64,000 nt of DNA. It comes from Hyalangium minutum. GTDB lineage: Bacteria; Myxococcota; Myxococcia; Myxococcales; Myxococcaceae. The stretch spans positions 434,001-498,000 of the forward strand of contig NZ_JMCB01000003.1 in assembly GCF_000737315.1 (NCBI RefSeq), written 5' to 3'. Of the stretch, positions 3 through 64,000 are shown one piece after another (positions within the stretch are counted from its first letter, which is position 1; each line of letters opens with the position of its first letter). Under the pieces are notes generated by a model, which had not been told where the DNA came from, did not search any database, and was given only the letters and a program-made list of their open reading frames with translations. A program made the position numbers and the translations under genes.

Positions 3-368
3 GAGGTCCTCTCCAACTTGCTGCTGCTCGAGGGCTCGGCCACGGACCCGAAGAAGGTGTTCTTCACCTACAAGCAGATCGTCAGCGAGCGCACCACGAG
101 CACCACCACCCTGCAAGGCGTGGCCCTCATTTCGGAGGGGAAGCTCCAGCGGCTGGTGACCTTTGAAACGTCCCAGCATGAGATCGGTGAGGGCACGAGC
201 GAGGAAGTGGCCGTCAGTGTGCTGGTCCCTACTTACACCGGGGGCAAGGTGTCGAAGCTGGTGACCACCCGCCTCGAGGATGCCGAGCCCGTGTATGACA
301 TCTCGGAGGACACCCCCGGCGTCGAGCTGAAGGTGACGACACTGGTGCCTCCCCTCTCCGGTTCATGA
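3..368 (+). CDS. Partial hypothetical protein (3' end; start lies before the window)
   Basis: Frame open from base 3 to TGA at 366-368; stop overlaps the next start (ATGA), suggesting an operon. Confidence 0.7.
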   Translation, partial: EVLSNLLLLEGSATDPKKVFFTYKQIVSERTTSTTTLQGVALISEGKLQRLVTFETSQHEIGEGTSEEVAVSVLVPTYTGGKVSKLVTTRLEDAEPVYDISEDTPGVELKVTTLVPPLSGS

Positions 369-1405
369 GGATCGCGGTGCTTTGGGCGCTGCTGCTCCCA
401 GCGGCAGCGGGAGCCGAGCCGCCCTGGAACTTCGGCGCGTTCATGGATCCGGTGCGCATGCCCGCCACCTCGGCGGAGACGTGCGAGCCGTGCCACACCG
501 AGCAGTACGCCGCGTGGAGCCAGTCGCGCCACCGGCACAGCATGGGCAACGCCATCTTCCTGGATGGCTTCGCCGCAGAGCCCCATGCCCGCTGCGTCTA
601 CTGCCACGCGCCGCTCGAGTCCCAGGCGAAGGCGGTGCTCCGGTGGCGCCCCAAGGTGGTGCGCGAGCGCAGCCTGGCCTCGGTGCCCGAGGCCTCTCTG
701 GCGCACGAGGGCATCACCTGTGTGACGTGCCACGTCCGTGACGGCGTGGTGATGTCGCCCAACGCTGGAGCCTCTTCGGACGCCCACCCTGTGCGGTTCG
801 AGCCGAAGCTGCGGGAGGCCTCCTTCTGCTCGAACTGCCACGAGTTCATGGGGCACGACCTCGTGAACGGCAAGACCGTGCTCACGGATGAGAAGATGCA
901 GACGACCTGGAGCGAGTGGCTCGCGTGGCGCGCCCAGGGCGGCGAGGGCTCGTGCCAGGACTGTCACATGCCGGGCAAGTCGCACGCGTTCCGGGGGGCG
1001 TATGATCGAGACTACCTGCGTGGCGCGCTGTCTCTAAGCGTGGAGCGGGTGCAGGGAAAGCTCGTCGCGGTGGTCGCGTCTCGCGGGGTCGGACACGCGT
1101 TCCCTACGGGCGACGTGTTCCGCCACCTCATGTTGTGGGCCGATGACACGCTGGTGGCGCGCTTCGGGCAGACCTTCAAGCTCCAGACGACGGCCAGTGG
1201 CGAGCTCGGGCTGCGCCGGACCGGGAACACCAGCCTCCAGCCCTTCGAGCCCGCGCGGGTGGCTCTCCCCGCAGGGACGCGGCGGGTCCGGGTCACGTAC
1301 CACTTCGCCGATGACCGGCACGAGCAGCGTGGAACCGTCCCCTTGGATGACCTCATCGTCGAGCTGGCTGCCCTGGATGTGCCCGCGGCTCCCGAGATGC
1401 AGTGA
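365..1405 (+). CDS. Secreted multiheme c-type cytochrome (5 CxxCH; cytochrome c554-like N-terminal region)
   Basis: Signal peptide MRIAVLWALLLPAAAGA; motifs CEPCH, CVYCH, CVTCH, CSNCH, CQDCH. Confidence 0.88.
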   Translation: MRIAVLWALLLPAAAGAEPPWNFGAFMDPVRMPATSAETCEPCHTEQYAAWSQSRHRHSMGNAIFLDGFAAEPHARCVYCHAPLESQAKAVLRWRPKVVRERSLASVPEASLAHEGITCVTCHVRDGVVMSPNAGASSDAHPVRFEPKLREASFCSNCHEFMGHDLVNGKTVLTDEKMQTTWSEWLAWRAQGGEGSCQDCHMPGKSHAFRGAYDRDYLRGALSLSVERVQGKLVAVVASRGVGHAFPTGDVFRHLMLWADDTLVARFGQTFKLQTTASGELGLRRTGNTSLQPFEPARVALPAGTRRVRVTYHFADDRHEQRGTVPLDDLIVELAALDVPAAPEMQ

Positions 1406-1418
1406 GGCCCTGGCCTCC

Positions 1419-4010
1419 TCAGGGGGCACGTTCCGTGGGACGCAGGCAGTCCAGCTCCAGCTCCCGCAGGAAGGTCAGGAAGGTGTTGTCTCCCACCGCC
1501 GCGCGAGCCTGCTCGACAGAGGCTCGCGCCGCCTCCCAGTCCCTGTCCATCTTGAAGCGCGTGGACTCCAACACGTGCTGGTTCGCCTCGCGCTCTCGGG
1601 CCAGGCGCTGGGCCTCCAGACCCTCGGCCGGCGCCAGCCGCGCGCCCAGGGGCTCTCCCACCGCGAGCAGCTCCTCTGGGTGGAAGGGCCGGTCCGAGTT
1701 GAAGAGGAAGTACTCCACCCGAGGGTGGTCATCCGTCATCGCCGGGTAGCCCTGAGCGTAGCGGCGCAGGGCCTCCGTGCCCGCCACGTAGGTGCCCAGC
1801 AGGCCGTAGGGGCTGGTGAAGCCCACGTCCGCCAGCGAGCGCTCCACGGAAGGCTTGGCCCACTCTTGCTGCCAGCGCGCCCAGTCCACCGTGAGCGGCC
1901 GATCCGAGGCCACGAGGATCGCCTCGTAGTCGGAGGGAATCCACAACGTCACCTCGGAGAAGGCCTCCAGCAGCGAGGTGATCATCCCCCGCGTGAGGTT
2001 GTCCGGCTGCTGCTCCAAGGGGATCCACTGGGAGAGGATTCCGCCGGGCGCCAGCCGCTGCTTCACCAGCCGGTAGAACTCGGTGGTGTAGAGGTTCACC
2101 ACGCCGGCCGAGCGCGGTGGCGGCGGCTCGAAGGAGATGACGTCGAACTGGCGGCCCGCGGCGGCGAGCAGGAAGTGGCGCCCGTCATTGAAGACGACGT
2201 GGGTGCGGGGATCCTGGGCCACGTGGTGGTTGTGCTCGGCGAAGTGGGGCGCGGCCAGGAGCACATCCGGGTTGGTGTCCACGATGGTGAGCGAGCGCAG
2301 CTCGGGATAGCTGGCGAACGAGCCCGCGGTGCTGCCGGTGCCGAAGCACACCTGGAGCACCTCTCGGGGGCCGGAGTGCAGCAGCATGGGCAGGTGGGCC
2401 AGCGTGGCCATGTAGCGCTTCCGGGGCAGCACCGTGTTGGCGTAGCTCACCGAGCCGAAGAGGAGCTGCTGGTGGCGGAAGGATCGCTCGCGGCAGCCCG
2501 GCCCGCAGGCGTAGCGCCCCGAGTCACAAACGGTCTGGTTGTCGTACTCGAGCACCGCGAGCGAGCCGTCGATGCCCTCCTTGACGAAGAGGACGCGAGA
2601 GTCCACGTGCTCGGCGAAGCCGCGCACCAGGAGATCGCGAGGCACCAGGAGCACGCCCACCGCAAGCAACACCGCACCGGCCCACATGCTCCGCCGGGCC
2701 CGGGGCTGGGCGCTGGCATCCAGCGCCTGGACGCCCAGGGCCAGGGCCATGTTGAGCGCGCAGACGAGGACGAAGCTCCACTGAGTTCCGATGGTGGGGA
2801 CGAGCACGAAGCCCATCAGCAGCGAGCCCACGATGCCGCCCAGGGTGTTGACCGAGTACAGCAGGCCCACGTTGCTGGCAGCGGAGGCCACGTGCCTCGT
2901 GGTGAGTTGCACCACGAGCGGGAAGATGATGCCGATCAGCGAGGCGGGAATGAGGATGACGAGGGCCGCGTGGAGCAACATGCCCACGTAGGGTGCCTGG
3001 GGCCCCCAGCCGCTGAGCTGCGTGGTGAGGAGCCTCTCCACGGGCCGGGACAGGCCCAGCAGCGCCATGGAGATCAGCCCGGTGAAGGCCAGCAGGGACT
3101 CCACGGCAACGAACAGCTCCAATTCCCTCCCCCGCCCCGCCAGCCGCAGCGAGTACAGGAGCCCGCCGAGCACCAGTCCCAGCAGGAACGTGACGAGCAG
3201 GATGGTGAAGGCATAGGTCGAGGAGTCCAGCACCGTGGAGAGGACCCTGAACCAGAGCACCTCATAGGAGATGGAGCCGAACCCGCAGAGCGCGAACGCG
3301 GCCACGAGCAACTGGCTCTTCGTCCGGTTGAAGGTGGACGGAGACTCCGCAGCCGCGGCGGTGATGGTGGCGGCGGGCAGGGTCTGGGCGGGGAGCCGGG
3401 AGTGAAGCACCGCCACGACGACACCGATGAGCCCATTGAGCACCGCGGCAATGACGGCGGTGCGCCACAGCCCCACGGCTCCGATCAAATAGAAGCCCGC
3501 CACGCCACAGCCGAGCACCGCGCCCAGCGTGTTGAGCGCATAGAGGACGCCGAAGGAGCGGCCCAGGCCCTCCAGCTCGCGGGCGATGAAGCGCGTGAGG
3601 ACGGGCAGCGTGCCGCCCATGGCGAAGGTGGGCGGCAGCACGGCCAGGAACGAGAGCACCCCGCGCACCGGCAGCGGCCCTCCGCCCGCGAGCCCCACGG
3701 CATCCAGCAGCTCTGGCAGCCGCGAGAGCACCCAGGTGACGCCCAACGCGAGCACGGCGGTGGCGCCCTCCAGCAGGCCATAGACGAGCAGTGGCCGCTG
3801 GAGCCGATCCGCGAGCCGGCCGATCCACAGGCTGCCCAGGACGAGCCCCGCGAGGAACGAGGACACCACGAGGCTCACGGCGAACGTGGTGTGTCCCACG
3901 ACGAGGGTCAGGTAGCGGACCCAGATGACCTCGAAGACGAGGCCGCTCATTCCCGAGGCCACGAACAGCAGGCCCACCACGGCGAACAGTTTGGAGGAGA
4001 CGCGGCTCAC
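1419..4010 (-). CDS. Fused membrane (MFS-like) / spermidine synthase-like SAM-fold protein
   Basis: About 13 hydrophobic helices in two repeated halves (FEVIWVRYL...GHTTFAV / YEVLWFRVL...DSSTYAF), then QVCFGTGST, DGRHFL, FDVISFEPPPP, LYTTEFY motifs. Confidence 0.9.
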   Translation of the reverse strand: MSRVSSKLFAVVGLLFVASGMSGLVFEVIWVRYLTLVVGHTTFAVSLVVSSFLAGLVLGSLWIGRLADRLQRPLLVYGLLEGATAVLALGVTWVLSRLPELLDAVGLAGGGPLPVRGVLSFLAVLPPTFAMGGTLPVLTRFIARELEGLGRSFGVLYALNTLGAVLGCGVAGFYLIGAVGLWRTAVIAAVLNGLIGVVVAVLHSRLPAQTLPAATITAAAAESPSTFNRTKSQLLVAAFALCGFGSISYEVLWFRVLSTVLDSSTYAFTILLVTFLLGLVLGGLLYSLRLAGRGRELELFVAVESLLAFTGLISMALLGLSRPVERLLTTQLSGWGPQAPYVGMLLHAALVILIPASLIGIIFPLVVQLTTRHVASAASNVGLLYSVNTLGGIVGSLLMGFVLVPTIGTQWSFVLVCALNMALALGVQALDASAQPRARRSMWAGAVLLAVGVLLVPRDLLVRGFAEHVDSRVLFVKEGIDGSLAVLEYDNQTVCDSGRYACGPGCRERSFRHQQLLFGSVSYANTVLPRKRYMATLAHLPMLLHSGPREVLQVCFGTGSTAGSFASYPELRSLTIVDTNPDVLLAAPHFAEHNHHVAQDPRTHVVFNDGRHFLLAAAGRQFDVISFEPPPPRSAGVVNLYTTEFYRLVKQRLAPGGILSQWIPLEQQPDNLTRGMITSLLEAFSEVTLWIPSDYEAILVASDRPLTVDWARWQQEWAKPSVERSLADVGFTSPYGLLGTYVAGTEALRRYAQGYPAMTDDHPRVEYFLFNSDRPFHPEELLAVGEPLGARLAPAEGLEAQRLAREREANQHVLESTRFKMDRDWEAARASVEQARAAVGDNTFLTFLRELELDCLRPTERAP

Positions 4011-4017
4011 GTGGCCC

Positions 4018-4839
4018 CTACCCTACCTCGGCTGGACCGATCCGTCCCCAGTCGACATCCGTATGGCGGGAGCTGGGCTCTGGCTTGAGCCCCAGCTTCT
4101 TCAAGTCATCCGAGTACCGGGCCCCCTTGACGACCACCCAGCGCCGGGTGACGCGCCGGGCCTCCTGGAGTGCCTCGGGGGTCAGCGGAGCATGGTCGGC
4201 GAAGCGGCGAAGCACGTCGAAGCCCGGCTGCGCCTTGCGAGGCTTGGCGAACATCGGATCGAAGACCACGACATCAAAGGAGCGGGCGGGGAGCGTGCGC
4301 AGGTACGCGTGCGCGTCCGCGTGCACCACGTCGATGTGGCACGAGTCCGGCCCCAGCTCGTAGCGCTTCAGTCCCTCCGCCGCGAGGGCCGCCAGCGGAA
4401 GGCTCTTCTCCACTCCCACCACCCGCCCCTGAGGACCGACGGCCAGCGAGGCCACGAGCGCGTCCTGCGCCAGCCCCAGCGTGCAGTCGAGCACCGCGTC
4501 ACCTTTGCGCAGCTCCGTCACGCGGACGAAGGTGTCCGGCTCGCCCGTGGCCAGCCGGAGCCTGCGAAGGTGGGCCATGCCTCCGTGGAAGCCGTGGTGG
4601 CCCTCGCGATCCCACAGCGTCACGCCGTCATGGCCGAAGATGAGCAGGGCGTCCGCGCGCTCCTCGAGCCACTCGGAGATGCCCTCCTTGGGGTGGCGCA
4701 TGAAGAGCGGCACGCCCCACTGCCGCGAGGCGGCCTCGGCCTGGGCCCGCAGCTGGGGCTTGGGCCGGGCGCTGGTGGTGACGGCGAGTGGGACACGCAA
4801 GGGAACGGCAGGGTCCGTTGAAGTCACCACCCCAGGCAA
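4018..4839 (-). CDS. Class I SAM-dependent methyltransferase (RsmJ-like)
   Basis: VLDCTLGLAQDA SAM-binding motif, VVGVEKS, FDVVVFDPMF; start codon uncertain. Confidence 0.8.
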   Translation of the reverse strand: MPGVVTSTDPAVPLRVPLAVTTSARPKPQLRAQAEAASRQWGVPLFMRHPKEGISEWLEERADALLIFGHDGVTLWDREGHHGFHGGMAHLRRLRLATGEPDTFVRVTELRKGDAVLDCTLGLAQDALVASLAVGPQGRVVGVEKSLPLAALAAEGLKRYELGPDSCHIDVVHADAHAYLRTLPARSFDVVVFDPMFAKPRKAQPGFDVLRRFADHAPLTPEALQEARRVTRRWVVVKGARYSDDLKKLGLKPEPSSRHTDVDWGRIGPAEVG

Positions 4840-5179
4840 TCAGGAAATGGCCCCGTGGGATCCGCAGGAGCCTCACGCGGCAGGCGGGGCTGTTTGTGCT
4901 CTGGTGGACGCTGCCGTCCAGGGGGGCTTCCGGAAAAACAGGAGAGGAATGAATGTCAGAGTGTTCCGGTATTTAGAGTCTGAACACCGGAGAGGAGGTC
5001 CCCCGTGAAGCCCCAGTCCACCCCCGCAGCGCGTCGCAGCCCGGGCTCGCACCGCTCGATCTTCCAGATGCTCCTGGTGGCTGTGGCTTTTCTGTCCTGC
5101 CTCGTTCCCAGCGAGCGCACGAACTGAGGGATCCGCCGCGGTGCGTCGAGCGCAGGCGCTCGGCTATGTTCCCGGCACG

Positions 5180-6052
5180 ATGAAGACCACCTATCTGGGG
5201 ACGGCCACCCTCTTGCTGGAACTGGCGGGCTTGAGGCTCCTCACGGATCCCGCGTTTGATCCAGCGGGGACCGCGTACAACTTCGGTCCCTGGTACGCGC
5301 CGCGCTCCTGGTTCTCGTCGGAGAAGGGATACCGGACGCCGATCGGGCGTGGCGAGCTGGGGAAGGTCGATGCGGTTCTCCTGAGCCACGACCACCACGC
5401 GGACAACTTGGATCACGAGGGCCGCCAGCTGCTCACCGAGAGCTCCGTCTCTCGGATCATCACGACGCGAGCGGGGGCGGCCCGGCTCTCGAAGGAGGCG
5501 CCATCGGGCCGTCGCAGTGCCCCCGGTGAAGGCTTGGGCGTCGGTGGGAAGACGCAGGGCCTGGCATGGGGAGAGTCCACGCGGCTTGCGAATGGCGCCG
5601 ATGGGCTCAAGCTCACGGCCACACCCGCGAGGCACGGCCCGTGGGGGACGCCGCAAGTCCATGAGGTGATCGGGCTGCTCCTCGAGCCCGAGGCTGCTTC
5701 CGAGCCGACCGTGTGGATCTCCGGCGACACGGTGATGTTCCCGGAACTTCGGCGGTTCCTGACCCAGCAGCGGCAAAGCAGCCGGCGGGTCGACGTGGCC
5801 ATCATCCACTGTGGCGGTGTGAGCTTCCCGAAGGTTCCCGTCCTTGGGCGCTCGCGGTTCACCTTTGATGCGCAGCAGGTGATCGAGGTCTGCCGCCTGC
5901 TCGATCCGCGCGTGGTGATCCCCGTGCACCGCAGTGGGTGGACCCACTTCCGGGAGTCCGAGGATCAGCTGCGCGACACGCTGACGGGGGCCGGGTTCGC
6001 CGATCGCTGCCGGTTCCTCGGCTTGGGCGAGAGCACCGCCCTCACCTCCTGA
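5180..6052 (+). CDS. MBL-fold metallo-hydrolase
   Basis: LLTDPAF, SHDHHADNLD (HxHxDH-like), TPARHG, ISGDT, IPVHRSGWTHF; ATG at 5180 preferred over the ORF-track start. Confidence 0.88.
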   Translation: MKTTYLGTATLLLELAGLRLLTDPAFDPAGTAYNFGPWYAPRSWFSSEKGYRTPIGRGELGKVDAVLLSHDHHADNLDHEGRQLLTESSVSRIITTRAGAARLSKEAPSGRRSAPGEGLGVGGKTQGLAWGESTRLANGADGLKLTATPARHGPWGTPQVHEVIGLLLEPEAASEPTVWISGDTVMFPELRRFLTQQRQSSRRVDVAIIHCGGVSFPKVPVLGRSRFTFDAQQVIEVCRLLDPRVVIPVHRSGWTHFRESEDQLRDTLTGAGFADRCRFLGLGESTALTS

Positions 6053-8649: not shown

Positions 8650-9048
8650 ATGAGTGGCTCCAGTGGAGAGGTCGTCAGCCAGGTGCTGATGGCGGTGGCG
8701 AAGGTGAAGATCGGGCGGATCGTGCTGTGGATCCTGGCCACGTTGCTGGGGCTCATGGCGCTCGCGACCTGGGGGACCAAGGTGGCGGCGCCCCCGCTGT
8801 TCTTGTCTGTGATCCTCGCGGTGTTCGCGCTGATCGGAGCGTGGAAGGAGCGCAGGGAGAAGCGCTCCAGCGGCATCCTGGGGCTGCTGCCTCGGGTGGC
8901 ATTGGCGGCGGCCGGGTTGGGCATTGTCGCGCTGCTGTTCTGGCTGAGGAGCCGGAAGCGCCCAGCGGAGGCCTTGCCTCCCCCACCCTCTCCTGCGGAA
9001 ATCGACCAGCTGGCCAGCGTCGAGCGCGAAGGCGAGCGTGCGGCATGA
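8650..9048 (+). CDS. Hypothetical membrane protein (about 3 TM)
   Basis: RBS-like GAAGG upstream, hydrophobic helices, ATGA overlap with next gene. Confidence 0.7.
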   Translation: MSGSSGEVVSQVLMAVAKVKIGRIVLWILATLLGLMALATWGTKVAAPPLFLSVILAVFALIGAWKERREKRSSGILGLLPRVALAAAGLGIVALLFWLRSRKRPAEALPPPPSPAEIDQLASVEREGERAA

Positions 9049-9824
9049 GCACGGAGCTCGCGAAGACCGAGGAGCCCCTCTCCCCGTCGCTGTCCAAGCG
9101 GGAGCAGCTGGTGAAGGTGGCCCGGGCTGGGCTGAAGACCCTCGTGGGGGTGGTGCCCTCGCTGGTGGGGGCAGGCCTGTGGGGCGCGGTGAAGGGGGCG
9201 GTGATCTTTGGAACGGTGGGAGTGACGGTGGCGGTAGGCTACCTGCTGCTGCCGCGCTGGCTGCAGGGTGTGGAGATCCCCCTGTGGCTGAGCATCCTGA
9301 GCGGAGTGCTGCCGCCCGTGGCGCTGGGATTGGCGGGGGGCTACGCGCTCATGCTGCAGTCCGTGACTTCGAAGCTGGCGCAGCAGACACAGGAGCGCGG
9401 GCTGGTGGGCTACCTATACGCCATCATCAAGCCGGTGGCGGTGCAGGCGGCACGGCGGCTGCGGGGCACAGGGGCAGTGTCGAGGGCCGACCTTACCCGT
9501 GTCATTGATGACTCTCTGGCCGAGCGCCTCCGGGAGGCGGCCTCGGCCAGCGATCAGGAACCGGCCTCGCGCGCGGAGCGGCTTGAGCGCTTCCTGATGG
9601 AGCACTCCCGGCGCGTCCTGGGGCTGGTCGCCCTGCGCACGGCGCTGACGGCGCCGGATGTGCCCACGGCGGTGAAGAACCTGGAGACGCTGGGGATCGA
9701 TCGGCTGGCGGAGGCCCTGGCGGAGACGCTGGAGGACCTCTTCTTCTTCCAGATGATCGTGTCACTCGGCGCGGGCGTGCTGGCGTCGGCCATTCCCCCG
9801 CTGCTCATCTTGTTCCTGTACTGA
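9045..9824 (+). CDS. Hypothetical membrane protein
   Basis: Starts MSTELAKTEE at ATG 9045; several N-terminal TM helices and one C-terminal TM helix. Confidence 0.72.
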   Translation: MSTELAKTEEPLSPSLSKREQLVKVARAGLKTLVGVVPSLVGAGLWGAVKGAVIFGTVGVTVAVGYLLLPRWLQGVEIPLWLSILSGVLPPVALGLAGGYALMLQSVTSKLAQQTQERGLVGYLYAIIKPVAVQAARRLRGTGAVSRADLTRVIDDSLAERLREAASASDQEPASRAERLERFLMEHSRRVLGLVALRTALTAPDVPTAVKNLETLGIDRLAEALAETLEDLFFFQMIVSLGAGVLASAIPPLLILFLY

Positions 9825-9827
9825 GCC

Positions 9828-10346
9828 TCAGCGCTTCAGCGCCTTCTCGATGGCCTTGGCCAGGTCCTCGTGCCCGGCCACGCCCTGCCACGCGGCCACC
9901 GCGCGGCCCTGGCGATCCAGGATGAACGAGGTGGGAAGCGCGATGATCGGTCCGAACGCGCTCTGTCCCGAGATGATGCGCTCATCCGCTATCAGCAGCG
10001 GGTAGCGCAGCTCGTAGTGGTCCGCGAAGGGGCTCAACACCCTCGCCCCTTCCAGATCCATCCCCACGGCTACCACCTGGAGACCCTGCGACCCGTAGTC
10101 CCGCTGCAGCGCCTCCAGCGTCGGCATCTCCGCCACGCACGGGAAGCACCACGTGGCCATGAAGTTCACCAGCACCACGCGTCCGGACAGGTCCGCCGCC
10201 GCGGCTCGCTGAGGCCCCAGCGCAGGAAGCGCCAGCGCTCCCAGAAACCCAGCTCCGGGAGCCTCGACGGGCTCAGGGCCACTCTTGCACGCGGTCAGCC
10301 CCAGCAGCAGGGCGCACGCCAGGGCGCGGCCAACGAGCACGCTCAT
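9828..10346 (-). CDS. TlpA-family thiol-disulfide oxidoreductase lipoprotein
   Basis: Lipobox LTAC; VVLVNFMATWCFPCVAEMP; cis-Pro motif ALPTSFILDRQG. Confidence 0.9.
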   Translation of the reverse strand: MSVLVGRALACALLLGLTACKSGPEPVEAPGAGFLGALALPALGPQRAAAADLSGRVVLVNFMATWCFPCVAEMPTLEALQRDYGSQGLQVVAVGMDLEGARVLSPFADHYELRYPLLIADERIISGQSAFGPIIALPTSFILDRQGRAVAAWQGVAGHEDLAKAIEKALKR

Positions 10347-52765: not shown

Positions 52766-58066
<5,301 letters not shown>

Positions 58067-58282: not shown

Positions 58283-59440
58283 CTACCCCCCGCGTGCCCG
58301 CCGATCCGACGGCGGGTTCGCGTCCCGGACGAGCTCGTTGTACTGGTCGAGCAGATACTGTGAGAGCTGCCGGATATCCGAATGCGTGTTCTCAATCTGG
58401 TTCCACTCGACCTTCCGCCCTGCCCCGAAGTCCCAGAACCCACTGGTCCACCGGCAGATACGCTTCAGCGGCATCAGGTCCAGAGCGAACATGTCTCGCT
58501 TGAGGTGGATCCTGTTCCGATGCCGATCCGCGATGGCATCCATGAGCAGGCCCATGCTCTGGATTCCGGCGCCATGCATGAGGCGCGACTTCTTCGGTGA
58601 GATCCGCCAATCATCGGGGAAAACATCACTCACGGCGCCCCAGTAAGCGCAGAGGACGGTGACCATGGCATCAATGGCCCCCCCTGCCCCATCCTCCGAG
58701 CGGAACCGGTACAACACGCCCTCGTTTAGGCTGGTCTCCAGCATCTTCAAGATGGAGTTGTCCTTGATAATGCCGCTCGGGTTTGTCGGTGTCTGGATGA
58801 GCCCACGGAAGGGCGAGTGCCTCTTAGCGTTGAGGATGGTGAGGAGTTGGGACGGGAACCGCTTCTTGAGTAGATTCGACGGAAGCCGCGACTCCGTGTT
58901 GGGGAGCAACTCGTAGACAAGCCCCTTCGCGAGCGGCTTGGTGGAGTTGACCAGGATGAACTGGTCGGTCTGCTCGGCCACGTCGTCCGTGATGAAGGCC
59001 ACAACGCTCAGCGGAAACGAGTCGACGTTCGAGTCGCGAACAGCGGCCAGCCGCTGCTGCCCATCCACGACGAACGCGGGCTTGTCCTCGTCAAGCATCT
59101 CCTCTTCGAAAGGAACGCGCAGGGTTCCAGTCCGGGAGTACCCCTCGGGGTGGAACTCCGTGTCTGCGGGCTCGAAATGGACGCTTGAGTTGAAGGCCAG
59201 CACCACGGCGTTGGGGATCATCGGGTTGGGGCCTTCGATGAATCGCCGTATCTCGTCGATGTGCGAGAAAACCTCGGGCCGCTGATAGCCGCGAAGCGCC
59301 CCTTCTTCGTCCCTTCTCACACGGGAAATGGTCGCGAAGCGGTGGACCAACTTCCCGTCGACGGAGAAGACGTACAGCATCCGTTTCGGCCCTTGTTTCA
59401 CCTGAAGCGCGGGAAGCCGAAGCTCACGCTTTTTCGCCAT
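58283..59440 (-). CDS. dpdB: DGQHR-domain protein (DndB/DpdB-like)
   Basis: GYQR, IPNAVVLAF, FVVDGQQRLAA, QFILVNSTKPL; GGAGG RBS; directly downstream of dpdA. Confidence 0.82.
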   Translation of the reverse strand: MAKKRELRLPALQVKQGPKRMLYVFSVDGKLVHRFATISRVRRDEEGALRGYQRPEVFSHIDEIRRFIEGPNPMIPNAVVLAFNSSVHFEPADTEFHPEGYSRTGTLRVPFEEEMLDEDKPAFVVDGQQRLAAVRDSNVDSFPLSVVAFITDDVAEQTDQFILVNSTKPLAKGLVYELLPNTESRLPSNLLKKRFPSQLLTILNAKRHSPFRGLIQTPTNPSGIIKDNSILKMLETSLNEGVLYRFRSEDGAGGAIDAMVTVLCAYWGAVSDVFPDDWRISPKKSRLMHGAGIQSMGLLMDAIADRHRNRIHLKRDMFALDLMPLKRICRWTSGFWDFGAGRKVEWNQIENTHSDIRQLSQYLLDQYNELVRDANPPSDRRARGG

Positions 59441-59478
59441 GACAACACCCTCCAATGCCCACAGAAAGCCGCATCCCG

Positions 59479-60765
59479 CTAGGCGGCATCTTCCAAACCC
59501 AGACCCAGTTCGCTCCGAAGCTTTCGGTAGAAGACCCAGACGTTATGAAAGCCGCGCCGCCGGTTGCGCTCGGCCCCACGGAAGAGAATGACGTGGTGCC
59601 CGATGGAGCGGCAGACTTCGCACCCGCACTTCTTCCAGGGTTGGTCGGATAGGACCTCGCGGTACACCTCTGCCCTGCTGGTCCGTTTCTTGGCCGCACC
59701 CGCTTTCTTTTCCTGGGGCGAGCTCTCGGCGCACAGTTCCTCATAGTCGGTCAGGGCTGCGATCGATGCATTGATGTCCAACTTCCCCTTGTCGAAAGCT
59801 GCCATGGCCGCGAGCGCGGCTTTCTCCAGCTTGCGGGCCGTCTCCTGCCGGATGACACCGGAGGAGATTTTCTTTTGGAGCTTCGCGTTCCCCTCGACCT
59901 GGGGAATACGGATCGCGCTGTAAGTCCGGCTCAAGGTGTAATAGTTGTCCGAGGCATCCTTGAAGGCCTGTCTCAGCGGAGACGTGCCGTCGATGCTTGC
60001 CACGCCCAGGTCCGCAAATGCGTTCATGTGGTCGAGCCGGGTCACCCCCAGAAGATGAAGGCGGGTCTTCGGCTTCCGGACCTCTGCGATCTTCTCGAGC
60101 GACGCGAGGACCTCCGCCGTCTTGAGCGGAACCATGCCTCCAAGCGCGATATAGGAATAACCGATCGCCTGGAGTTCCTTGACCGCGTGAGCGTAGGACT
60201 TCGGGCTCCACCCCTGAGCGACACCAATGGGGGTAAAGCCCTCCTTCCGTGCCTTGCATCGGGTCCAGAACTGCTCCGCGAGGCTCAGGGTGATGGCCTG
60301 CCGCTCCTTGACCTCCTCTGGGGGCTGTTCACCCTTGGCGTCCCAGTCGGGCTGGTAGGCCAGGATCACATGATCCACCGACACCCCATAGTCGAAGCGG
60401 CAGTCGGAGTAGAAGTTGATGACTTCGTCAGCGGTGTACGGGGGGACCTTCTCCTTGACGTAGGTGAAGGCGCCACAGTCCCCCATGACCTCAAGGGGAT
60501 AAGGCACCTCCTCGATGCGCAGGAACTCCTTCACTCCGTTGCGCAAGAGCCGGTGCTTCTGGCCAATGGTGTAGCGGCTGCCCACCTGGCCGTAGCCATC
60601 GACGATGCCCTTGGAGACCAGCAAGCCGTCATAGGCGCGCGAGCGGAAGACTTCGTGGGCGTACAGATCGTCACGTTGCCTGACCCGGAGATCGTCCCGC
60701 CGTTCGGTCTCGAAGTCGAAGCTTGGGTCGACTAGGTCTTGGCTGTCAGGGAAGAAGAACTTCAT
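59479..60765 (-). CDS. dpdA: TGT-like DNA 7-deazaguanine transglycosylase DpdA
   Basis: MKFFFPDSQD, GDCGAFTY, SVDHVI, GVAQGW, ALGGMVP, HLLGV, SIDGTSP, Zn-site CGCEVC, RRRGFHN; context of que genes plus DGQHR. Confidence 0.88.
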   Translation of the reverse strand: MKFFFPDSQDLVDPSFDFETERRDDLRVRQRDDLYAHEVFRSRAYDGLLVSKGIVDGYGQVGSRYTIGQKHRLLRNGVKEFLRIEEVPYPLEVMGDCGAFTYVKEKVPPYTADEVINFYSDCRFDYGVSVDHVILAYQPDWDAKGEQPPEEVKERQAITLSLAEQFWTRCKARKEGFTPIGVAQGWSPKSYAHAVKELQAIGYSYIALGGMVPLKTAEVLASLEKIAEVRKPKTRLHLLGVTRLDHMNAFADLGVASIDGTSPLRQAFKDASDNYYTLSRTYSAIRIPQVEGNAKLQKKISSGVIRQETARKLEKAALAAMAAFDKGKLDINASIAALTDYEELCAESSPQEKKAGAAKKRTSRAEVYREVLSDQPWKKCGCEVCRSIGHHVILFRGAERNRRRGFHNVWVFYRKLRSELGLGLEDAA

Positions 60766-61709
60766 GGAGCTTTCCGTTGCGTGTCGTAGAGGCGATTGAA
60801 GCGCTCCATCTGGCACTTCTGCCCCGAGTTTCGGAACCTCTGGAGCAAGCCGCTGCGCGACTGCCGGGGGTTTTCTTCAAGTTCGTTCCGGATAAACTGC
60901 AGCACCTCGCCATCAGTGACGGGACTCCGGAGATTCTCAGGCCAGCCCCCCGTCTTGCGGGAGAGTTCGGCGACTCGTTCTCGCACGGCTGAGAGTTCCA
61001 AGCCCGTCCTGCGGGCTTCGAGCAGCACATGGCGTGCGACACGGGCGTAGAGCGAGGCCACCCCACCGCCCAGCGCGAAGACCAGCGCCCCCGGGCATTT
61101 GATCCAATGGGCACCAAGCGGCCCGGTCTGCAAAGGTGAGTCACTCGAGATGACGAAGAGCTTCTGCTGGGAGTGTCCAAGTTGGCTGGCGCGGACCAGA
61201 TCGGGCTCCATTGCGTCAACATAGGTGGAAGGAGCCACAATCATGAGGACGGCGTTCCGGTTGTTCTCGACCAACTCAGCGAGCGAGCGCGGCGTCTTCT
61301 TGGGCCGGTGTTCTCCCTGGGACAGCGCCTCCCACCAAGCCTGACGCTCGGCTTGGCCGCTCTTTCCAGCGGGAGCCACCGCGTCCTCCGACTTGCCCGT
61401 GAAGGTCGCCGAATAAGCATGAGCGGACCAGTTGCAGTTCCACAGGCCGTAGCCCGCAGAGGCCACCCATAGTTGGACCTCAAGCCCGGCCTCACGCCCA
61501 TCCGCGGGGAGCGAGCGGATCACCGACCAGTGCTGCCCGCCGTACAGGTCCAAGGCGGCAACCTCCCGCGTCTTCGAGGTCGCGAGCCGCTGACACCAAG
61601 CCGCAGCGCGGGTGGAAATCTCCCCTGCCGGAACTCGGGACAAGCGGAGTTCTGAAGGCACTTCCAGGAACTTCTTGTACGTGCAACTGGCAACCACGTG
61701 AACCTGCAT
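60762..61709 (-). CDS. Hypothetical protein, YaaA/DUF328-like (candidate DpdC counterpart)
   Basis: VASCTYKK...ALDLYGGQHW...VASAGYGL resembles YaaA/DUF6884-type motifs; stop overlaps dpdA start (ATGA). Family call is inference. Confidence 0.7.
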   Translation of the reverse strand: MQVHVVASCTYKKFLEVPSELRLSRVPAGEISTRAAAWCQRLATSKTREVAALDLYGGQHWSVIRSLPADGREAGLEVQLWVASAGYGLWNCNWSAHAYSATFTGKSEDAVAPAGKSGQAERQAWWEALSQGEHRPKKTPRSLAELVENNRNAVLMIVAPSTYVDAMEPDLVRASQLGHSQQKLFVISSDSPLQTGPLGAHWIKCPGALVFALGGGVASLYARVARHVLLEARRTGLELSAVRERVAELSRKTGGWPENLRSPVTDGEVLQFIRNELEENPRQSRSGLLQRFRNSGQKCQMERFNRLYDTQRKAP

Positions 61710-61730
61710 GGAGCAGCGAGGGAGCAGCGT

Positions 61731-62102
61731 CTAGCCGCGCCCCTCATCCTCCCCAGCATAGATGCACCCACTCGTGCAGGTCTCCCGCACCACGACGCTG
61801 CTCAGTTCCGGGAGGCTTGGCTTGAGCCGTTGCCAGATCCAGCGCGCCAGATTCTCGCTGGTGGGGTTTTCCAGCCCGGGGACCTCGTTGAGGTAGTGGT
61901 GATCGAGCGTCTCATGCAAGGGCTGGAACGCCGCCTTGAGATCCGCGAAGTCCCGGATCCAACCCACCTGGGGATCCACCGCTCCCCGGATATGGATCTC
62001 TACCGAGAAGGAGTGGCCGTGCAACCGTCGGCACTTGTGTCCCTCGGGAGTGAAGGGGAGCCGGTGTGCAGCCTCGAAGGTGAACGCCTTAAAGATCTCC
62101 AT
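61731..62102 (-). CDS. queD: 6-carboxy-5,6,7,8-tetrahydropterin synthase
   Basis: [50 protein letters not shown]. Confidence 0.95.
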
Positions 62103-62110
62103 GCGCCACC

Positions 62111-62752
62111 TTAGGGGATACCGAGGAGTTTGTGGGTCTGCAAGGACAGCCTCCAGCGCGGATGCGCGAGGCAGTACTCGACACAGGACTGGGTGTGTCG
62201 CTCACGGTCGGGACCATCGAGCGGCTGCAGGAAGAAGTGGGAGAACTCCAGGGACTCGAAGTTCTCGGGAGGCATGCCCGCCTGGGGATAGACCAGCTTG
62301 AGTTCCTGGCCCGCGCGCAGGGCAAGCTGAGTGTTCGCCTTAGGGCTGACGCAGATCCAGTCAATGCCCGGCGGTGGCAGGAGCGTCCCATTGGTCTCGA
62401 TCGCTATCTCGAACGACCGGCGGTGGAGTTCCTCGAGGAGGCTCACATCGAGTTGCAGGAGCGGCTCGCCTCCGGTGCAGACCACGAGCCTCTTGCCGTG
62501 CCGCCCGCGCCAAGTGGCCTCTACCGCCGCAGCCAGTTCTTCAGCATTCCGGAAACTGCCACCTCCTGCGCCATTGGTGCCGACAAAATCGGTATCGCAC
62601 CACCGCGAGCAGCCACCGGCTCCGTGAGGCCGGTCCGCCTCGCGGCCGCTCCAGAGGTTGCAGCCGGCAAACCGCAGGAAAACAGCGGCCCGGCCTGCCT
62701 GACCGCCCTCTCCCTGAAGAGTATAGAAGATCTCCTTGACTGCGTACGCCAT
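62111..62752 (-). CDS. queE: 7-carboxy-7-deazaguanine synthase (radical SAM)
   Basis: [52 protein letters not shown]. Confidence 0.95.
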
Positions 62753-62755
62753 CCC

Positions 62756-63457
62756 CTACTCCGCCCGGTACCGTGCTGGATCTTTCGCACCGGCTTCGCG
62801 GAATCCCTTGAGCCGAAGCTGGCAGGAATCGCAGTGGCCACAGGCCTCGCCCAGGGGCGACGGATCGTAACAACTCAAGGTGATCCCATAGTTCACCCCC
62901 AGCGTGAGTCCAGCGCGGATGATCTCGGCCTTGCTCAGCGAAATAAGGGGGGTATGAATCCGGAGCCGCTGGTGCCCTTCTACTCCGGCCTTGGTAGCCA
63001 AGTTCGCCAGTCGCTCATAGGCCTCGATGTACTCCGGGCGGCAGTCCGGGTAGCCCGAGTAATCGAGCGCGTTGACTCCGATGAAGACATCGCTCGCGCC
63101 GAGCACCTCGGCCCAGGCCAGCGCGAAGGACAGGAAGATGGTGTTGCGCGCCGGCACATAGGTGACCGGAATCCCTTGGGATATCTCGGACGCGGGCCGA
63201 TCCTTGGGCACAGCGATGTCCGCCGTCAGGGCTGAGCTCCCGAACATGCTCAGATCGATCTGAGTGATCTCATGCCGGACGGCACCCAGGCTAGCGGCCA
63301 CGCGCTTTGCCGCCTCAAGTTCCACCTCGTGCCGCTGGCCGTAGCGAAAGCTGAGAGCATAGGGCATGAACCCCTCGGACTGGGCCATGGCGAGTGCCGT
63401 GGCTGAGTCGAGACCACCACTGAGGAGCACCACCGCCGTGCGTTCCGTGCCGGACAT
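62756..63457 (-). CDS. queC: 7-cyano-7-deazaguanine synthase
   Basis: [45 protein letters not shown]; ATG 63457 with GGAG RBS. Confidence 0.96.
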
Positions 63458-63663
63458 GCCATCTCCCAACCGCGCTCGTCGGATCCACACGAACCACGGC
63501 TACCCGCCGTTAGGCGGGCACCCGATAGCACACGCGTTCGCTGTTTCACAGGCGCGGTCGCCATCCTACGTGACGATCCTACTGTGCAGGTAGATAGCAC
63601 CCTGGGCGTTTTAGGCAACTTAACAGGTTGTATCTGGAGTGCTCCGCCGCTCGCTTCCCAGGC

Positions 63664-64000
63664 TTACGAAGCGCAGTGCCCGTCCTCTGCAACTCCTGTA
63701 AACTGCGCGTCGCGGTCCTTACGGTGCTTCTCCGGGGCTTGGCGAGCCCCGGGGCCGGAACGCGGGACTTGACTCGCGGCGCGAACTCGCGTCTCAGGTA
63801 GTACCCCCACACATCTTAGTATGAGGCGGCCCTCGACGGGCCGAGCATATGCCTCGGCCAGCTTGACACCCCAGGGGATTCCGCGGAGGCGCTCCTGGGA
63901 TGCCGAAGCCGCCTCAAGGTGGGCGGGCCCGCCCTGCCCATTCCAAGCAGAAGTGCTCAACAGGTTGATTGCACCCGCGACGGTGCCTCGATAATGTCGG
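63664..64000 (-). CDS. Possible 3' end of a gene entering from beyond the window
   Basis: Minus-strand frame of the 63664..63960 ORF stays open to the window edge (RHYRGTVAGAINLLSTSAW...); no recognisable motif. Confidence 0.25.
   Translation of the reverse strand, partial: RHYRGTVAGAINLLSTSAWNGQGGPAHLEAASASQERLRGIPWGVKLAEAYARPVEGRLILRCVGVLPETRVRAASQVPRSGPGARQAPEKHRKDRDAQFTGVAEDGHCAS

Follow-up and report, generated by a model that had tools for sequence, protein, structure and literature searches.

A candidate Dpd-type DNA modification operon and its divergent partner gene cluster in Hyalangium minutum

Comparison with described 7-deazaguanine systems

The chemistry by which Dpd systems place 7-deazaguanine marks in DNA has been reconstituted in vitro. 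The locus considered here lies in a stretch of 64,000 nucleotides (hereafter the window) from Hyalangium minutum (GCA_000737315.1, contig JMCB01000003.1; window position 1 is position 434001 of the record), a host that bears out the myxobacterial origin supposed in an initial annotation made from the sequence. It consists of a six-gene operon, queC-queE-queD-dpdC-dpdA-dpdB, and of a divergent cluster of six further genes, hereafter the partner cluster. The operon taken alone is one more member of a well-populated, already described family, and the interest of the locus rests on the restriction arm inferred from the partner cluster, which lies largely outside the window. The explanation favoured here, with moderate confidence, is that the operon provides the modification arm in a defence island of Dpd type, similar to restriction-modification systems, which also has an alternative restriction arm.

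With the Dpd system of Salmonella enterica serovar Montevideo (DpdA-K; PMC10164549, PMC5699537), the locus shares orthologues of DpdA, DpdB and DpdC in the order dpdC-dpdA-dpdB, the clustering of genes for preQ0 (7-cyano-7-deazaguanine) synthesis, the setting of a horizontally acquired island adjoining a tRNA gene, and a YprA-family helicase accompanied by a nuclease in the adjoining operon. It differs from this system in that DpdD, E, F, G, H, I and K are absent from the Hyalangium island, a 1049-aa Dna2-like PD-(D/E)XK protein being found instead of the phospholipase D-type (PLD) nuclease DpdK, and two unrelated P-loop NTPases plus two proteins (U461 and U343) instead of DpdE-I. Moreover, the helicase matches DpdJ over its motor region only, with a weak MZB/DUF1998 match.

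Loci of Actinobacteria, Acidobacteria and Planctomycetes (L004-L081; L numbers denote the loci and contigs of this analysis) show the same gene order and orientation, with 50-62% identity in DpdA and 45-60% in the DpdB copy downstream of dpdA (DpdB2). Their arrangement is queC-queE-queD-(folE2)-dpdC-dpdB1-dpdA-dpdB2, whereas the window has neither the upstream copy dpdB1 (B1) nor folE2, and most of them are flanked by DpdD/K/J or DpdE/F genes, unlike the Hyalangium operon. The dpd islands recorded as restriction-less in the GATOR-GC survey (PMC11888242), in which Archangium, of the same family, is listed, likewise have dpdA, dpdB and dpdC without dpdD-K; these were scored for canonical dpd genes only, whereas the Hyalangium island has a candidate non-canonical restriction arm.

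The haloarchaeal BRIGADE systems (bioRxiv 10.1101/2025.09.15.676423) also combine a 7-deazaguanine biosynthesis cluster with a YprA-family helicase. Their nuclease is sometimes of the PD-(D/E)XK type, and in type I it is often a large DNA2-like nuclease/helicase fusion, which is the nearest described analogue of the Hyalangium protein. BRIGADE has been reported from halophilic archaea only and usually has two YprA helicases together with DpdG and DpdHI/BrxC, in contrast to the bacterial host and single YprA-like helicase found here; no PADLOC match to DpdG, DpdH, DpdI or Brx was obtained in the partner cluster, either directly or with the Myxococcus xanthus orthologues. Finally, phage DpdA/preQ0 clusters (PMC6884629, PMC10516641) resemble the operon in associating a DpdA-family transglycosylase with QueC, QueD and QueE, but they are anti-restriction devices, generally without DpdB and DpdC.

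By the membership criteria for Dpd systems, the modification arm was classified as Dpd and the restriction arm fell outside the canonical DpdD-K set. What it shares with the canonical operon is limited to a YprA-type helicase and a nuclease. No published description of the partner cluster was found in the literature, the coverage of which was incomplete. We give roughly even odds to the proposal that the block NTPase-NTPase-YprA-like helicase-Dna2-like nuclease (preceded by U461 and U343 in the readable close relatives) represents a hitherto undescribed class of bacterial Dpd-like systems, in which an Fe-S PD-(D/E)XK nuclease with a dead superfamily 1B (SF1B) helicase domain would replace the PLD nuclease DpdK and sense the absence of the 7-deazaguanine marks made by DpdABC. 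If so, the features common to both kinds of restriction arm (a YprA-type helicase and a nuclease) would likely be the core of mark-dependent restriction, and some dpd islands surveyed as 'restriction-less' may be complete systems.

The modification operon

The six genes were each found as an intact open reading frame (ORF) starting with ATG and free of internal stops, separated from queC to dpdB by 3, 8, 21, -4 (an ATGA overlap) and 38 bp (Table 1), so that the six co-oriented genes and the spacings given for them in the initial annotation were matched exactly. The G + C content of the operon is 62.6%, against 68.4% in the remaining window, and its third-position G + C is 0.75-0.81, against 0.91 for the neighbouring kinase gene. 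The arrangement is far beyond chance, because each gene scores above the cut-off of a curated model, and the identities assigned to the six modification genes from these profile matches are regarded as nearly certain.

Table 1. Coordinates of the operon genes and associated features (window positions)
Feature	Coordinates	Strand	Basis
queC, preQ0 (7-cyano-7-deazaguanine) synthase, 233 aa	62756..63457	-	TIGR00364 and Pfam QueC
queE, 7-carboxy-7-deazaguanine synthase (radical SAM, Cx14CxxC type), 213 aa	62111..62752	-	TIGR04508
queD, 6-carboxytetrahydropterin synthase, 123 aa	61731..62102	-	TIGR03367 and Pfam PTPS
dpdC, 315 aa (left without a name in the initial annotation)	60762..61709	-	PADLOC DpdC models
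junction of the dpdB1 deletion	60779..60793	-	L001 versus L002 DNA alignment
dpdA, predicted DNA-guanine transglycosylase, 428 aa	59479..60765	-	NF041059, PADLOC, 7UI4
dpdB (B2 position), DGQHR/ParB-like ATPase, predicted partner of DpdA, 385 aa	58283..59440	-	NF041060, TIGR03187
divergent spacer queC/U461	63458..64000 in window, to 64080 (623 bp in total)	.	
promoter-like conserved element	63936..63993	+	identity to M. xanthus and L087

For the preQ0 genes, QueC reached 198.9 bits with TIGR00364 (cut-off 150.3) and 246 bits with Pfam QueC; QueE reached 331.5 bits with TIGR04508 (cut-off 240), the full length being covered; and QueD reached 111.1 bits with TIGR03367 (cut-off 89.25) and 132.8 bits with Pfam PTPS. 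Pfam and NCBIfam scans of the six operon proteins detected no QueF, amidinotransferase or FolE domain, and neither folE nor folE2 was found anywhere in the window. The equivalog models thus agree with the initial annotation, in which QueC, QueD and QueE were read as encoded and folE and queF as absent. Beside queCDE, 31 related loci carry an additional gene (about 275 aa), mostly between queD and dpdC, which was recognised as FolE2 (PF02649, 318 bits).

The transglycosylase is assigned to DpdA rather than to the tRNA enzymes, as the initial annotation had proposed for this TGT-like gene. It scored 574.4 bits against the DpdA equivalog model NF041059 (cut-off 200) and 591 bits against the PADLOC DpdA model, and the S. 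Montevideo DpdA (7UI4) was its sole PDB sequence match (E 4e-131, end to end), with no tRNA-TGT chain in the PDB matching at E ≤ 0.001. In Salmonella DpdA, Asp95, Asp256, Asp130 and Phe99 were shown to be essential or proposed to be catalytic (PMC10164549). The window DpdA retains Asp95 (D96), Phe99 (F100), Asp130 (D131), Leu236 (L239), Asp256 (D259) and Phe265 (F268), as well as the zinc motif CxCxxC...H (C380, C382, C385 and H407). It has Q184 in place of His181; this substitution was considered as a possible DpdA defect and rejected, glutamine being the majority state (50 of the 54 relatives in which the motif is recognisable) and histidine being found in the Vibrio copies only.

A tRNA modification of queuosine or archaeosine type, or the synthesis of a deazapurine secondary metabolite, could be envisaged instead of DNA modification, as QueC, QueD and QueE are common to the queuosine pathway and TGT is the only Pfam family hit by the transglycosylase. 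We judge this highly improbable: the Pfam TGT match amounts to 21.4 bits and falls short of the cut-off (26.3 bits), against the equivalog and 7UI4 matches given above, DpdB and DpdC, which are partners specific to DNA systems, are encoded next to dpdA, and queF, queA and toyocamycin-type genes are absent.

The ORF preceding dpdA was matched over its residues 1-311 by the PADLOC DpdC models PDLC02817 (216.6 bits, E 1e-64) and PDLC02818 (167.7 bits). Its product shares 26% identity (E 5e-25) with that of the gene at the dpdC position of the canonical Enterobacter plasmid cluster and 75% with the DpdC of Myxococcus sp. Y35, and its gene position is syntenic. DpdC has been assigned to DUF6884 (PMC11888242). 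The PDB search with the window protein returned a single weak match, which was judged irrelevant.

The DGQHR gene, taken in the initial annotation as the DpdB partner of the transglycosylase, was upheld in this role: it scored 467.6 bits with NF041060 (cut-off 300), 211 bits with the TIGR03187 DGQHR model and 88.6 bits with Pfam DndB, it is likewise called DpdB by PADLOC, and a DGQQR motif is present at residue 126. Most relatives have two DGQHR genes flanking dpdA, B1 upstream and B2 downstream, which form two orthologous groups with about 38% identity between them; additional dpdB copies have been recorded elsewhere (n=801; PMC11888242). B2, the only one carried by the window, shares 46% identity with the annotated DpdB of the Enterobacter plasmid pPOL9A, compared with 35% for the B1 paralogue, and the canonical Enterobacter cluster has one DpdB only, encoded after dpdA. 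The window gene is accordingly classified by sequence as the orthologue of canonical DpdB.

By DNA alignment with Myxococcus sp. Y35, B1 (about 1.15 kb) is precisely absent from the window, positions 9973-9987 of the window locus (L001) aligning to positions 8835-9987 of the Y35 locus (L002). The window DpdC ends in ...ERFNRLYDTQRKAP before the stop codon, and the Y35 B1 in ...AQHQRKAS. As these last DpdC residues match the tail of the Y35 B1, the alignment identifies a deletion that joined the body of dpdC to the final B1 codons (..QRKAP and stop), the ATGA overlap with dpdA being retained. The compactness of the operon is thus a secondary, derived state, due to the deletion of B1, and the initial annotation is to be corrected on this point. 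The loci L020 and L049 also have the order C-A-B without B1.

The same deletion raises the question of a decaying remnant in which DNA modification has been lost, which would agree with the chimeric C-terminus of DpdC, with the absence of FolE2 and with the internal deletions by which queC and queD have decayed in the closest relative, Myxococcus sp. Y35. This seems improbable, given six intact ORFs with full-length profile coverage, the catalytic residues and ATGA coupling that have been kept, the retention of precisely the DGQHR gene that is orthologous to canonical DpdB (a single DpdB being also the state of the Enterobacter plasmid cluster), and the occurrence of C-A-B loci without B1 in L020 and L049. 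In Y35 itself (L002 6749-7894), the internal deletions affect residues 25-145 of queC and 28-97 of queD, and dpdC-B1-dpdA-B2 as well as the divergent DpdE and DpdF genes are all intact; in this strain, preQ0 presumably comes from the housekeeping pathway.

The roles of DpdA, DpdB and DpdC were reconstituted in vitro with the Salmonella Montevideo proteins (PMC10164549). By analogy, host FolE would provide dihydroneopterin triphosphate, which QueD, QueE and QueC would convert to preQ0; DpdA and the ATPase DpdB would then put preQ0 in the place of specific guanines of double-stranded DNA, and DpdC would turn the resulting dPreQ0 into dADG (2'-deoxy-7-amido-7-deazaguanosine). The presence of DpdC makes dADG the end point to be expected, and the occurrence of dADG in Hyalangium DNA is considered probable. 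The initial annotation had predicted dPreQ0 and/or dADG; with its nameless ORF now read as DpdC, dADG is kept as the end product and dPreQ0 becomes an intermediate.

The distribution of the operon was surveyed by scanning one genome per species, which yielded 80 DpdA loci. The order queC-queE-queD-(folE2)-dpdC-...-dpdA-dpdB was found in most of them, in Actinomycetota, Acidobacteriota, Planctomycetota, Gemmatimonadota and Myxococcota. The nearest DpdA relatives are those of Myxococcus sp. Y35 (89% identity) and of a Myxococcaceae metagenome-assembled genome (MAG; 81%). DpdA-DpdB pairs were also found on 26 plasmids, and the window DpdA matched one of 50,697 phage records, with 42% identity. 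Two loci of Vibrio breoganii and Vibrio sp. (L063 and L064) have two divergent DpdA-DpdB pairs (B<A<C< then A>B>), with queE, queC and DpdE/DpdF behind them, so that one island has two different transglycosylases.

The divergent partner cluster

The partner cluster starts 81 bp past the end of the window (U461 start at window-equivalent position 64081), divergently from queC, and comprises six co-oriented genes in the order U461-U343-U957-U1080-hel1607-nuc1049 (about 498081-514576 of the record). U957 and U1080 are the P-loop NTPases, hel1607 is a YprA/DpdJ-like superfamily 2 (SF2) helicase of 1607 aa, and nuc1049 is the Dna2-like protein of 1049 aa. Under the favoured explanation, this arm would stand in for canonical DpdD-K as the restriction arm, the helicase and the NTPases surveying the DNA and the nuclease degrading DNA that is unmarked.

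U957 has a Walker A motif (GEWGHGKS) with weak AAA_22 and AAA_16 matches, and U1080 a weak AAA_22 match. The possibility that these two proteins are divergent DpdH/BrxC was rejected, no similarity being detected by PADLOC, phmmer or BLASTP. An AlphaFold model of U461, built from 6 close homologues, was unusable (pLDDT, the predicted per-residue confidence, 34.8).

Hel1607 contains DEAD and Helicase_C domains, with intact GTGFGKT and DEMH motifs, and a sub-threshold match to MZB (MrfA-Zn-binding, DUF1998). DpdJ was the best PADLOC match of its M. xanthus orthologue (82% identity), with 221 bits over positions 51-453 of a 1487-position model; the resemblance of hel1607 to DpdJ is confined to the N-terminal motor region, with 26% identity by BLASTP. 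'Deeper-branching Dpd-like' YprA helicases have been mentioned (bioRxiv 10.1101/2025.09.15.676423), a description that hel1607 fits. Among the canonical-type loci, the helicases nearest to hel1607 (153-174 bits) are the DpdJ-like proteins of 1633-1776 aa encoded in L007, L020 and L049; these loci may form a further Dpd-like subclass.

Nuc1049 itself has no Pfam match, and its relatives carry PF12705 (PDDEXK_1) or PF13087 (AAA_12). A PDB sequence search with the family profile gave nothing significant. With 12 homologues as input, AlphaFold gave a model (mean pLDDT 73.9; predicted TM-score, pTM, 0.68) whose top Foldseek match was the Dna2 nuclease-helicase 5EAN (E 2.6e-23, whole-length TM 0.49), SF1B helicases of Upf1 type ranking next. 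Aligned members of the family share an invariant PD...(E/D)xK...Q..Y pattern and seven invariant cysteines; at the Walker A position (DAPGRSALR in nuc1049), GK[T/S] is absent in all members. On this basis nuc1049 is read as a putatively active PD-(D/E)XK nuclease on an ATPase-dead SF1B scaffold, with a cysteine cluster of Fe-S type. The family is rare, with 12 clusters in a search of 5.8 billion proteins and 89 representatives (E ≤ 1e-3) among 1.84 billion.

Canonical restriction genes were not recovered in this region. PADLOC v2 gave zero matches for all but one of the six partner proteins, either directly or via their M. xanthus orthologues, and no match to DpdD-I or DpdK among the operon neighbours or the M. 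xanthus orthologues of these. No DpdD-K homologue was found in the window (tblastn with family representatives, and phmmer) or within 10 kb.

Twelve independent contexts of the partner cluster, or of its helicase-nuclease pair, were examined, and in half of them (six) the dpd modification genes lie directly beside it. The two gene sets are divergent in Hyalangium and in tandem in Logan SRR9290677 (L084; ...1606-1049-dpdC-B1-dpdA-B2). They are convergent in Corallococcus exercitus (L006), in a Pirellulaceae MAG (L029; helicase 44% and nuclease 40% identical to those of M. xanthus), in Logan SRR19214166 (L085) and in a JGI contig, the latter with FolE2. Of the 47 DpdA loci for which 19 kb or more could be read, 25 have DpdD/K/J as neighbours, 10 have DpdE/F, 3 the partner cluster and 9 nothing recognisable. 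Because two rare gene sets adjoin in differing orientations and phyla, it appears rather likely, from this recurrent gene neighbourhood, that the partner cluster is functionally coupled to the dpd operon.

The operon might otherwise be an orphan modification module, producing dADG for epigenetic purposes or for protection from other restriction enzymes, next to an independent defence system. Precedents are the dpd islands, Archangium being named among them, which were recorded without a restriction operon yet with dpdC (PMC11888242), and the nine long DpdA loci mentioned above, which are without restriction genes within 10 kb. In M. xanthus the partner cluster is also found apart from dpd genes, beside a CBASS operon, and in L087 it adjoins a type III restriction-modification (R-M) system. 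This alternative is regarded as possible and clearly the less likely one, in view of the adjacency of two rare gene sets in six contexts drawn from at least two phyla, in three relative arrangements, of the damage in the dpd-free M. xanthus copy (its U1080 orthologue is frameshifted into ORFs of 680 and 342 aa), and of the DpdJ-like helicase and the nuclease, which belong to the activity classes of canonical Dpd restriction operons.

Several points weigh against the explanation by a modification arm coupled to an alternative restriction arm. On the side of the operon, the folE function must come from elsewhere in the genome, DpdC has zero Pfam or NCBIfam matches, and the second DGQHR paralogue of most close relatives has been deleted. 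On the side of the partner cluster, U461, U343, U957 and U1080 could not be linked to any Dpd protein by PADLOC, phmmer or BLASTP, five of the 12 contexts stop at contig edges and are uninformative, and dpd genes are absent from the 10 kb around the M. xanthus cluster (CP017169.1). Unrelated systems are, moreover, often juxtaposed in defence islands, as with CBASS in L082 and the type III R-M system in L087.

The M. xanthus cluster lies between the CBASS operon and an integrase fragment beside tRNA-Leu. At this locus (L082 1-3984 and 10001-13242), the CBASS operon (DncV-like nucleotidyltransferase, E1/E2 and JAB) and insertion sequence fragments stand beside the partner cluster with its split U1080 orthologue. 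In L087 (Logan ERR9903773, positions 66-5426), the type III-like R-M pair consists of an N6_N4_Mtase protein of 955 aa and a ResIII protein of 829 aa; it is divergent from the partner cluster, at the site held by the dpd operon in Hyalangium.

Genomic island and divergent spacer

The two arms belong to a low-GC island of about 24.5 kb, which extends from the dpdB stop codon to the end of an nSTAND1 fragment adjoining a tRNA-Pro gene, with a G + C content of 0.62-0.67 compared with about 0.69 in the flanks. The nSTAND1 fragment (385 aa, matching the first 165 of 379 profile positions; L083 14240-15653, with tRNA-Pro(GGG)) follows the partner cluster, and housekeeping genes lie beyond the tRNA gene (HU, pheT, pheS, rplT, rpmI, infC and thrS). 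Downstream of dpdB, the near boundary of the island is marked by a gene of normal host G + C content (52766-58066, minus strand), encoding a Ser/Thr kinase/AAA_16/GAF/HATPase_c (histidine kinase) protein of 1766 aa. The only att-type direct repeats between the island ends were 10-mers, no integrase was found at the island, and no tRNA gene is present inside the window. The lower G + C content and the tRNA-adjacent island are consistent with the horizontal acquisition suggested in the initial annotation. The minimal module that it had also suggested has to be abandoned, the operon being the modification arm of this larger island with its divergent six-gene second arm.

A match to the Rfam family CRISPR-DR20 within queE (62610-62646, plus strand; 26.6 bits for a gathering score of 42) was taken as due to chance, because there is no repeat array at this place.

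The divergent spacer presumably carries the promoters of both arms. No Rfam riboswitch family was detected upstream of queC, and no sigma-70 or terminator consensus in the spacer. The conserved element listed in Table 1 (..CAGGTTGATTGCACCC..GCCTCGATA..) is located about 90 bp upstream of U461 and shows 88% identity over 58 bp to its M. xanthus equivalent, with diverging flanks; it is also shared over 34 bp with the Logan contig L087, and looks like a promoter or an operator.

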